Positions 16,101 through 19,638 of a stretch of DNA of 64,000 nucleotides are shown here, piece after piece. Position 1 is the stretch's first letter. Each line of letters opens with the position of its first letter. The stretch covers positions 19,592,001-19,656,000 of the forward strand of contig NC_088857.1 of the NCBI RefSeq assembly GCF_963853765.1, in the 5' to 3' direction. The stretch is from Magallana gigas (Eukaryota). Under the pieces are notes generated by a model. It was not told the origin of the DNA, ran no database searches, and was given only the letters and a program-made list of their open reading frames with translations. The position numbers and the translations under genes are program-made.

Positions 16101-19100
16101 AAACCATTATTTATGATGTCGACTTTCAACTGCATGTCTTAAACGAGGATTCAAATTCTAATGATTCCATAGGATACATACTGTTTACAGTTCATAAAAT
16201 GGAAATACATCTGTAGATTACCTTCATCAGTCAAATCATCGTCTTCCTCCCCAGCAACCATCTCCAGATTCCCAGAGGCTAACATGGCCTTCAATTTCTC
16301 GTTCTCCTCCTGTAGTTCACGAATCAGCTTCTCTGTGGGGTCCTCATTGACGGAGGCACTGTTCTTGATCTGCTTGGCTCGGTCAGCATACCTCAGGGTG
16401 GAGAGGGTCTCGTCGAAGTTGATGTCGGCGGGGGACAGGGCAGCAATCATGATGGTCTTGCTGTTCCCCCCCAAAGCATTCTTCAGTAGTTTGGTCAGTA
16501 CAGAGTCTCTGTAGGGAACTGAAATTGAAGATAATGGCATTTAAACTTCTCTATAAGTAGAAATGTACAAGTTACAGGTAATCTGAAAAGAACAAAGAAA
16601 GGTGCAAGATAACAGAGATGTATTTGTGATCTGTACATCTTACTTAGGAGGGATTTTATATATTGTATTTATCAAGAGAGAAATTTTAACTTCAACTATC
16701 AATTAAAAAAAGAGTTTTTAACCTCATGTATTTTTTTTTCAAAAAGAAGTTTCTACCTGGGCTAATTATCAAGAGAGGGGTTTTTAAAATTCTTAAGTAT
16801 TTAACAGGATAGGCATTTTTACCTCGGGTATTTTTTCCGGAGGACCTGTCTGCCAGGGCAGCGATGACGTTACCCAGACAGGACAAAGACTGGTTAATGG
16901 CGGCACCCTCCTTCAAACGGTCACCAGTGGCTCCTGTGCTGTCAGCTCTCTCACTGAAATAGCATCAATGGCAACCTTTATTCAGTGAATACCACAAGTA
17001 GATTTTATTTGTAAAATGTTAAAAAAAAACTCCCTAGGTGGATCCTACTTGCTTAATATGAACATGAAAAATCAAAATAGTTGACATTTAATTTCTCTTG
17101 CTGCTAAATTAATTAATGTTATTTCCAATTTGAAAAGGAGAGTAACTTAATTTTTGAATTTTAATTTGTCTTTTGGAGAATTGATCTTATTTGCTAAAAT
17201 CTTGACCAAGATGTTACAAATAAAAATTTCTTTCTTCTGTATAATTTTTAATATTATTCATGCATTCATTATCTGCTGTACCTGCCAGCCAAATCCACTA
17301 GGTTAGTAACAGCTGTTTTAGTGGTGTCTTCTCCTGCAGCATTCTGGAATTTCTGGGTGAAAGTAATTCCAACAATGGTGTGGGCTCGACTGAAATGAGA
17401 AACAAAATGAAGTTTAATGAACTCTGACCAAGAACTTTAATAATTTGAAAGAACATTGGCTTCGCTTGTGCAACTGACACCTTTTTATTTGTTAATACAG
17501 GTAAGAAAACCAAAATACTGAATAGGGATATAATACTGTGCACTATCTGGGTTGGTTGGATTCACTCACCTGCTGGTGGCATTCATGTTTGTGGAGGCTA
17601 CAGTTCTGTTCTGAGTCCCCTCCTCCATTCTCTGCTCAATGTCAGAATAGTTACTGACAGGTACAATTTTCAGTCCATCAGCTGTAATATACAAATAGGG
17701 AGATGCAAAAACCTCCTAATTCTCTCTCTCTCTCCTCTTTCTCCTCTCTCTCTGAATGGATTACACTATATAGCTGCATACACTTTTTGCATATTCATTT
17801 AATTCCTTTCACTTTATTTGAACAAAGTCTGTGAATAACTCATTTTATATCAATTTTTATTATTTGTTTACCATAAAATCCTAGCTTGGGATGCTGTCGG
17901 ACCTTCAAACCACTTTTCTTTCGTGAACCATCCAAAAGGTCACGAACTTGTTCATTGTAGATTTCCAACATGCTGAATGTAATCTATCACCAAAAGACAG
18001 AGCAAATTAAAACTAAATTTGCACTTCATCTATTCCATTATTTTTAATTAAAGTTTCTCCAAAAAATGAAGTCTTCTTTTACACAAAAGGACACTAGGGG
18101 TTGGGATGGAATTATAGATACCTCAAACTCAGTCTTATCTCCTTCTGCCTTCTTTGCTTCAATTTGTTTGAAGACATCATCACAGAACAAGGGCACAATA
18201 CCTGTACATCAAATGATTTAAAATTAAAATACTGGTACAGGTACATTAAAAGATTGCAGATGTCAATGAAACAGAAATGATATCTCATAAAAAATCTAGT
18301 TTTGTTTGCAACTTGTGCTGCAATATACACAAGTCTGCAGTATTTCCAATTAATTATAGATATTGAATGTACAGAATTTTTTTTAATTTTATACTAAAAA
18401 ACTTGATACCCATAAATTGCAATTACTGTTAATCATGAATTAATCAATAATTAAATTATTAAAATTAAATTTAGTAAACTCAATTTGACAATTTAAAGTT
18501 CACTTTGAAGGTGATCATGCAATGAAAATGCTGTTTTCAACAAATTGGTTTGCATTTTTTTCACATTTTCTCAAATAAGATAGCTTTGATTTTAAAAAGA
18601 TATATTTTTTTAATTAATTTATACCGGTAATTGCCATATGTTTACCTTTGTTGATTCCATATCCAACCACTGACCAACTTTTCCCGGATCCAGTTTGTCC
18701 GTAAGCAAATAATGTGCTGTTATATCCTTCCCACGCATTTTTCAACACAGCTACGCCTAATGCATCATACACTTTTTTCTATAAAAAAAAATACATATTA
18801 ACAATGACATGCTTTCTTTGTAGATTCTCGTTGTGTATATACATGTACATTGTATGTATAATTGCATAAATGTTTATAATTGATTCACACCTGGTCAGCA
18901 AATTTTTTGCCATTTGGATGGGAGGAATCAGGGCCATAGTATCCATTACTCTCTTCTTTGCTTCCATCATGAGACCAGAAGCTGTAATCAAATGTGAATT
19001 TTCGTGGTTCATCGCTTCCAGAGGGGTCTGAAATCTGGGTTGTCGCCCCATTCATTTCAATGATAAGCGTGGCATTTCTCTCCCTTTCACGTCGATTGTA

Positions 19101-19638
19101 AGCAGTGTTAAGGCGTAACTAATATTTGGGATAACTAGATTTTTATCAAAACATATTTGTAAGAAATTTGATGCATAACATTATATCAACATTCTGTAAT
19201 CCTCTGCCAAAATAAATATGCAACCAGTCGAGCAAATTCATGCTTTAAAAAAAAAAACTACAGTAAGTACTAAGGGGAATGGATTTTTATGCTTACATAC
19301 TTTGATTTACATGTACACCGATCATAAACTGCGTAACGCTGCATCCCTATTTTAATTATGATGCCACTTATTAATTTGAATATTCCGATAATAAAATAAT
19401 TATATATATGTGCAAACCGTAATTTAAGTCCTATAAATACATGTATTAAACTTTTGATATGCCGACTATCTACTATAAAGCTTATAATGGTACTAGTTAT
19501 TGAAAAATTACATAACCTCAATACACTTTAGCACTACTCCAGTACATATGCAACTGCAGGTCCAAGAAAACAAAATGAATGAATAAAGGATATGAAAGGT
19601 CGCACTCTGACGGCAACTCGGACGTTTTCCTCCGGCAT
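4172..19638 (-). CDS. KIF28: Kinesin-3 family motor, KIF28/KLP-6-like (motor, coiled coil, FHA, C2-like region, Ser/Lys-rich tail with CaaX), about 1065 aa
   Basis: 21 coding exons in transcript order: 19594-19638, 18891-19097, 18646-18778, 18122-18201, 17872-17983, 17570-17681, 17282-17389, 16823-16953, 16222-16518, 15836-15960, 15443-15609, 14267-14398, 13877-14031, 13303-13589, 13094-13177, 12875-12937, 12483-12626, 12164-12289, 11628-11861, 5443-5581, 4172-4488. Total 3198 nt, in frame. Motifs: [32 protein letters not shown]-loop [61 protein letters not shown]. Intron 1 is AT-AC and all others are GT-AG. Confidence 0.88.
4665..4872. mobile_element. MITE of about 210 bp (ACTGTATACAGGG...CCCTGTATA) in the last kinesin intron
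   Basis: Imperfect terminal inverted repeats and no coding capacity. A fragment of another MITE follows at about 4880-4957. Confidence 0.55.
5785..11371 (+). mobile_element. Large composite HINE/pearl-like element with internal tandem arrays and nested insertions, filling kinesin intron 19
   Basis: The 5' subterminal ATACCCGCAC (5810-5819) is the inverse of GTGCGGGTAT in the 3' hairpin ATACCCGAACTTTC-TTTA-GAAAGTGCGGGTAT (11338-11369). A (GACG/GACA)n tract lies at 11272-11320. There are diverged units of about 130-135 bp at about 9290-10340 and units of about 160 bp at about 10360-11200. That both ends belong to one element is inferred. Confidence 0.6.
6449..7685. mobile_element. Non-autonomous DNA transposon, 1237 bp, with GGGTG...CACCC TIRs
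   Basis: The left end GGGTGTTGCTAAAACGCGGAACGGAAAACGGAA mirrors the right end TTCCGTTTTCCGTTCCGCGTTTTAGCTACACCC. ATACAT flanks both sides (6443-6448 and 7686-7691). Confidence 0.85.
14577..14803. mobile_element. Tc1/mariner-type MITE of about 225 bp
   Basis: Ends are ACGGTAAATTCCTTA and TAAGGAATCTACAGTA. It belongs to the same family as 50324-50544, in the opposite orientation. Confidence 0.65.
19098..19593 (-). other. U12-type (minor spliceosome) AT-AC intron, 496 bp
   Basis: The 5' splice site ATATCCTTT starts at 19593, the branch site CCTTAAC is at 19113-19107 and the terminal AC is at 19099-19098. Splicing joins RPF to NRRE and restores the conserved kinesin RPFNxRE motif in frame. Confidence 0.92.

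Follow-up and report, generated by a model that had tools for sequence, protein, structure and literature searches.

A U12-type AT-AC intron at the start of the motor domain in a KIF28/KLP-6-type kinesin gene of Magallana gigas

Introduction

In one kinesin gene of the oyster Magallana gigas, the start of the motor domain is split between an exon that ends in RVRPF and an exon that opens with NRRE, which raises the question of what kind of intron is removed to join them. The gene lies on the minus strand of a 64,000-nucleotide (nt) stretch of DNA (NCBI RefSeq assembly GCF_963853765.1, contig NC_088857.1, positions 19,592,001 to 19,656,000), referred to here as the window and numbered from its first letter. 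An earlier note, made from the letters of the window, had read positions 19098-19593 as a U12-type AT-AC intron. We found that this interval is, with high confidence, a genuine U12-dependent AT-AC intron, the first intron in a KIF28/KLP-6-type kinesin-3 gene.

U12-type AT-AC introns are a minor class removed by the spliceosome of U11/U12 and U4atac/U6atac.U5 (Tarn & Steitz 1996, as cited in PMC10639083). Pan-eukaryotic surveys of minor introns exist, and the junction described here is already implicit in RefSeq models. Our literature searches found no paper linking KIF28 with U12 or minor introns.

Results

Coordinates and splice signals of the first intron. Direct reading of the minus strand, re-checked by script, places a 496-nt intron of phase 0 at 19593..19098, between Phe15 and Asn16. 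The coding part of exon 1 (19638..19594) starts with ATG at 19638 and contains 15 codons, and the first bases after codon 15 are ATATCCTTTATT. The U12-type 5' splice site of the AT subtype, ATATCCTTT, occupies 19585..19593 and matches the consensus RTATCCTTT at all nine positions. The criterion for the branch site was a TCCTTAAC-like element standing about 10 to 20 nt ahead of the 3' splice site and not followed by a polypyrimidine tract. The element GCCTTAAC at 19107..19114 agrees with the consensus TCCTTAAC at seven of eight positions. The presumed branch adenosine is 19108 (or 19109), 10 to 11 nt from the 3' end of the intron, with the second A of TTAAC at 10 nt, and the spacer on its 3' side (ACTGCTT) has no polypyrimidine tract. 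The last 22 bases of the intron are GTTACGCCTTAACACTGCTTAC. The intron ends in TAC, its AC terminus at 19098..19099 being given by both the sequence and the RNA joint described below, and exon 2 opens in phase 0 at 19097 with AAT CGA CGT GAA (NRRE).

The coordinates proposed in the earlier note were thus exact, and so were its CCTTAAC about 10 nt from the intron end, its AC terminus and its restored reading frame. The same note had also stated that no GT-AG solution links the two exons. This holds for the exact RVRPF-NRRE join; however, 18 in-frame GT-AG or GC-AG combinations exist nearby, each of which deletes or inserts residues.

The signals are rare in the window, with ATATCCTT found only twice and CCTTAAC three times on the minus strand of the 64 kb. 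By our estimate from base composition, all three signals would fall by chance at the position demanded by the alignment with a probability of about 5e-10. The window has further matches to RTATCCTT at 4882, 18722 and 52767 on the plus strand and at 59488 on the minus strand. These were rejected as U12 sites and are probably due to chance, since none lies in an open coding context or has a branch site at the proper spacing. No Rfam model matched anywhere in the window at the gathering threshold, and therefore no known embedded small nucleolar RNA or similar element lies within the intron.

RNA evidence for the junction and the first exon. In RNA runs labelled as oyster, about 28% of the sampled words of positions 16100-19800 were present, roughly the exonic share. 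RNA was placed on positions 16100-20600 from three contig runs of three studies (X2, X5 and X1) and from one raw, stranded polyA run of a fourth study (X19). In all four runs, 19594 was joined to 19097, the joint (19096->19593) skipping 496 nt. Contig depth over this joint was 260 (X2), 136 (X5) and 78.5 (X1), equal to that of the flanking exons, and in X19 the joint was spanned by four reads with three distinct starts. Two nucleotides fit on either side of the joint, so that TA..CA, AT..AC or CA..TA could be drawn on the minus strand with an identical mRNA; we assigned the cut to AT..AC because it is the only known splice-site pair among the three equivalent placements. The junction predicted by the earlier note is therefore present in three assemblies and in raw reads. 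No competing junction at exon 1 or exon 2 was seen in the four runs.

Exon 1 extends over 19594..19760 and comprises a 5' untranslated region (UTR) of about 86 to 122 nt and the first 15 codons. No joint to an exon upstream of it was seen in the four runs, which indicates that exon 1 is the first exon. The 5' ends of the RNA contigs lie at 19724, 19741 and 19760, with Illumina adapter beyond 19760. The sequence beyond the 19724 end is what we take to be the reverse complement of a template-switch oligo, and 19724 is therefore probably a cap site. First mates of the stranded run X19 lie on the plus strand over the gene, as expected for a minus-strand transcript. Three of the four runs (X2, X1 and X19) carry variants in exon 1 at 19612 (G>C on the plus strand) and 19615 (A>T); each changes the third base of a codon and leaves the amino acid unaltered (GCC>GCG, Ala; GTT>GTA, Val), as would be expected if exon 1 is coding.

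Three side observations concern this end of the gene. With a transcription start at 19760 instead of 19724, the 5' UTR would contain two short upstream open reading frames, with ATG at 19748 (4 codons) and at 19733 (10 codons). One X2 contig, at a depth of 5.9, connects 18778 with 18901 through an insert of ten T's, which probably reflects faulty assembly or priming and not an alternative acceptor. About 540 bp upstream of the transcription start, a dispersed repeat of about 150 bp occupies 20300-20450. Its 40 copies scored in the genome (among 212 candidates) are all 95-98% identical, RNA covers it very deeply on both strands (to 3400 in X2), the contigs diverge at both edges, and it has no match in Rfam; it resembles a young short interspersed nuclear element or an element like a miniature inverted-repeat transposable element.

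Minor spliceosomal RNAs of the oyster. Rfam models found the minor small nuclear RNA (snRNA) genes in the 564-Mb genome to which the window belongs, one copy each and all above the Rfam cut-offs: U12 at 126 bits, U11 at 98 bits, U4atac at 81 bits and U6atac at 90 bits. On inspection of the extracted sequences, their recognition boxes are intact. Nucleotides 18-23 of oyster U12 (GUAAGG) are complementary to CCUUA-C of the branch site, with six Watson-Crick pairs and one bulged A. The 5' end of oyster U11, UAAAAGGG, is complementary to UCCUUU of the 5' splice site, and U6atac has kept its AAGGAGA box, which is complementary to the ATATCCTTT 5' splice site.

Conservation among paralogues and animals. 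A search of the same genome with exon 2 returned two paralogues, a closer one (C4) and a more distant one (C6). At the identical position, the C4 gene (25989651-25995000, minus strand) has a 629-nt AT-AC intron with ATATCCTTT at its start and TTCCTTAAT before a terminal CAC; its 3' end reads TTTCCTTAATATACCGCAC, followed by the AAT of the exon. The bodies of the two introns have no similarity beyond the splice signals, so that what is conserved is the signals and not the intron body. The C6 gene (18147500-18157400) likewise has a short first coding exon that ends just after RVRPF, but its intron is of the U2 type, GT-AG, about 1.86 kb long, placed 6 nt downstream (RPFNQ/REK, the slash marking the junction) and without U12 signals. 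Either an independent origin or an old conversion or slide could account for it.

A HMMER search with exon 2 against 1.84 billion representatives gave 489 matches. Many of these are open reading frames called on genomic contigs, which continue past the upstream edge of exon 2 into the intron, so that the residues before the Asn of exon 2 are [FSI]L[NT]xx[HY], the in-frame translation of TTCCTTAAC followed by the terminal YAC. Among 45 such unspliced calls, the residue before Asn is His, Tyr or Asn, whose codons can end in AC, in 39 (binomial P of about 5e-30 against a 12% background) and Lys or Gln in 5.

At the DNA level, AT-AC introns occupy the same position in Biomphalaria glabrata (660 nt), Lingula anatina (1960 nt) and Diadema antillarum (2189 nt); the organisms behind the assembly accessions were identified from publications. 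The Limulus polyphemus locus has the 3' end, CCTTAAC..CAC, at this position; the 6 kb upstream did not reveal an exon 1, so that this locus documents the 3' half of the intron. One Logan contig (L008) carries an AT-AC intron of 63 nt with the variant branch element TTCTTTAAC, and a second (L019) carries a 3' end only, ATCCTTAAC..CAG. In Argonauta hians (GCA_054771915.1), the intron is 4651 nt long, starts with GTATCCTTT and ends CTTAAC..TAG, the GT-AG subtype of U12 introns, with CTTAAC 14 nt from the 3' end. Here the U12 intron has switched subtype from AT-AC to GT-AG.

Overall, a U12-type intron was found at the same RPF/N position at seven other loci, in the paralogue and in other animals, as the comparison of orthologues suggested by the earlier note had asked. 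The 5' site is RTATCCTT at every locus where a 5' site was found. A CCTTAAC-like branch element is present at nine of nine loci, with fixed spacing at eight; at the loci that match the strict pattern CTT[AT]A[CT], the branch adenosine is 10-14 nt away from the 3' end. The gene model of the octocoral Paramuricea begins ...FLNISH/NKREK, which, at the peptide level, suggests the same intron 3' end in Cnidaria. The intron is therefore ancestral to the family: it was present by the time of the last protostome-deuterostome ancestor, and probably already in the cnidarian-bilaterian ancestor. It has remained U12-type since then, with a change to the GT-AG subtype now and then. This agrees with a published account in which molluscs, Lingula and Limulus are described as comparatively rich in minor introns (PMC10639083).

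The host gene. The gene extends approximately over 4172..19760 (minus) and has about 19 to 20 coding exons, which encode motor, FHA and KIF1B-like domains and a tail ending in CVLL. Exon 2 (18891..19097, minus) contributes 69 codons, ends in KKFADQ and has RNA joints on both sides; intron 2 (18890..18779) is GT-AG; and exons 3 to 9 (16222..18778), also with RNA joints, encode the remaining motor domain and the neck. All seven introns separating exons 2 to 9 (16222-18891) are GT-AG, seen as CT..AC on the plus strand. The spliced coding sequence is uninterrupted and encodes a complete kinesin motor with P-loop, switch I and switch II.

Pfam searches with the exon pieces matched Kinesin (9e-20) and FHA (3e-5); matches to Kinesin_assoc (1e-5) and, weakly, to KIF1B (0.005) were below the cut-off. 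Among solved structures, exon 2 best matches full-length C. elegans KLP-6 (7WRG; E value 1.7e-12), ahead of KIF1A (6e-8), and the tail exon matches KLP-6 residues 589-684 with an E value of 6.9e-22, as against 0.009 for KIF13B. Relatives carry the source names KIF28/KIF28P or 'Kinesin-like protein 6'. Over the assembled motor, identity is 95% to KIF28P isoform X1 of Crassostrea virginica and 97% to a transcript-derived cluster (P0220), whose protein maps along 19638..4175 by tblastn. These matches assign the gene to the KIF28/KLP-6 family of kinesin-3, nearer KIF28/KLP-6 than KIF1, KIF13, KIF14 or KIF16. Its C-terminus, ...SSSCVLL* (4175-4190, minus), is conserved in P0220 and in C. virginica KIF28P.

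Retention of the first intron. About 126 reads of X19 were placed in total, so that the retention comparison involves about five reads in the U12 intron and about one to two in the U2 introns. Depth in the three bins of the U12 intron was 2.05, 0.81 and 1.48 (mean 1.45x) beside flanking exons at about 7, as against 0, 0, 1.11 and 0.31 (mean about 0.36x) in the four bins lying wholly within U2 introns. The higher depth in the U12 intron is a trend in the expected direction, amounts to a handful of reads and is not significant. In one contig run, a 145-nt intronic contig lies in the U12 intron at 12% of exon depth; the U2 intron at 16954-17281 likewise has contigs, at 5-8% of exon depth.

Effect on gene models of the family. 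We sorted the N-termini of 125 public KIF28-family proteins. The N-terminus is complete in 89 models; 29 start within exon 2, mostly at the Met equivalent to residue 30, and about five start with translated intron, read in from its 3' end. About 27% of the 125 models are therefore truncated or corrupted exactly at the U12 intron. The faulty models include several NCBI KIF28/KIF28P entries and three M. gigas entries for the C4 paralogue; two of these (P0258 and P0261) begin with an internal Met, and the third (P0215), labelled 'partial', begins with the translated intron, IPH/NDREK. The deposited Argonauta hians model (567 amino acids) is without exon 1; the missed exon lies 4.65 kb upstream in Argonauta and 0.66 kb upstream in Biomphalaria. 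The expectation that gene predictors would mis-model this N-terminus is thus borne out for the family. However, the C. virginica RefSeq orthologue of the window gene has the correct join, which indicates that evidence-based pipelines do cope.

Discussion

The splice signals, the junction seen in vivo, the presence of complementary minor snRNAs and the conservation of the intron together lead us to conclude, with little doubt, that 19593..19098 is a genuine U12-dependent AT-AC intron. Like canonical introns of its class, it has the ATATCCTTT 5' site and a TCCTTAAC-like branch element 10-11 nt from AC with no polypyrimidine tract, and it is the sole such intron among ordinary GT-AG introns, at a conserved position. 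There is no mechanistic difference from them; the oyster intron has the less usual phase 0. In short, it is an ordinary textbook U12 AT-AC intron, real and ancient, whose chief practical consequence is the frequent corruption of automatic gene models.

The likely course of splicing is the usual one for this class. U11 would pair with the ATATCCTTT 5' splice site, and U12 would pair with GCCTTAAC, so that the branch adenosine, 10-11 nt before the AC end, is bulged out. U11 would then give way to U4atac/U6atac.U5 and the intron would be removed, joining Phe15 to Asn16 and rebuilding the conserved RVRPF-NxRE start of the motor.

Several points weigh against this conclusion. Phase 0 is the least common phase among U12 introns, a rarity noted too in PMC10639083. 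The branch site matches at seven of eight positions, and its G in place of the consensus T costs one pair with U12. The raw-read support for the junction in X19 amounts to only four reads, and the contig-based runs are assemblies, which rare isoforms could escape. Finally, the dependence of removal on U11/U12 is what we infer from the sequences of the intron and of the snRNAs.

The termini of the intron do not by themselves settle its class, since the major, U2-dependent spliceosome also excises a small number of AT-AC introns. In those U2-type introns, the 5' site is U1-like and a polypyrimidine tract is present. The perfect ATATCCTTT 5' site here, the CCTTAAC placed 10 nt before the intron end and the lack of a pyrimidine tract argue against U2-dependent removal, and so do the RTATCCTT at each 5' site found and the CCTTAAC-like element at all nine loci, eight of them with fixed spacing. 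In Argonauta, moreover, the termini became GT-AG while the U12 signals stayed. Removal of this intron by the major spliceosome is accordingly highly improbable. It could also be argued that the productive mRNA uses another junction or first exon and that the AT-AC join is minor or artefactual, produced by template switching or as an assembly chimera: the 18 in-frame GT-AG or GC-AG combinations formally exist, and the joint has 2 nt of microhomology. However, the four runs, each from a different study, show no competing joint at exon 1 or exon 2, and contig depth at the joint equals that of the flanking exons. Past the 5' ends at 19724-19760, the contigs continue into adapter or template-switch sequence. 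The join also rebuilds a motif that 89 of the 125 family proteins share, and the identical join occurs in the C. virginica RefSeq orthologue. We give an alternative productive junction hardly any credence.

If the intron is of the U12 type, as we conclude, it may nevertheless be an evolutionary relic, spliced no more slowly than its neighbours and having no regulatory role. We consider this rather likely. A pan-eukaryotic survey credits neutral processes with much of minor-intron evolution (PMC10639083), and the retention signal is not significant. On the other hand, the intron has held its place and its class in at least six of the lineages sampled, and its spacing from branch to 3' end in five of them, which is compatible with constraint and no proof of it; the mean depth of 1.45x against about 0.36x in X19 (about five reads against one to two) also runs counter to a relic. 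The intron may instead have been held since before the bilaterian-cnidarian split as a gate, such that slow minor splicing sets the output of this motor, which is associated with cilia and vesicles, and couples it to cilia-related minor-intron genes. Examples of the latter are Kif6 and Kifap3 (MIDB, PMC6717393), and cilia genes fall upon loss of ZCRB1 (PMC11326282). Such a regulatory consequence is speculative and, in our judgment, improbable. Were it true, lineages losing the minor spliceosome would have had to rewire the control of KIF28/KLP-6.

Mammalian Kif6 and Kifap3 resemble the oyster gene in being kinesin-related genes with one U12-type intron each. However, they belong to other families (kinesin-9 and a kinesin-2 accessory protein), and the Kif6 intron is of the GT subtype (GTATCCTTT), at a position unrelated to that of the oyster KIF28 intron. 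In the mouse and human MIDB minor-intron tables, within the part of PMC6717393 available to us, Kif6 and Kifap3 are the only KIF genes, with no kinesin-3 gene and no Kif28 among the entries.

C. elegans KLP-6 (7WRG) and vertebrate KIF28/KIF28P form the orthologous family, exon 2 and the tail exon of the oyster gene matching KLP-6 best. To our knowledge, nematodes have no minor spliceosome, and the intron must therefore have been lost or converted there.

Useful by-products are the deep conservation of the intron, the switch in its subtype and a figure for the annotation error. About one-quarter of the 125 models lose the first ~29 residues, including the start of the first beta strand of the motor, or carry translated intron. 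Tracing this fault to one intron permits systematic repair, and it warns against taking 'N-terminally different' KIF28 isoforms as biology. The intron is also a clean and easily scored marker (one position, two subtypes, many phyla) for tracking the retention, switching and loss of minor introns. Dependence of KIF28 expression on the minor spliceosome, as the earlier note had supposed, would be mechanistically sound, and no alternative junction was seen in the four runs. The predicted dependence would make this ciliary-type motor one more gene that responds in its expression to the activity of the minor spliceosome.

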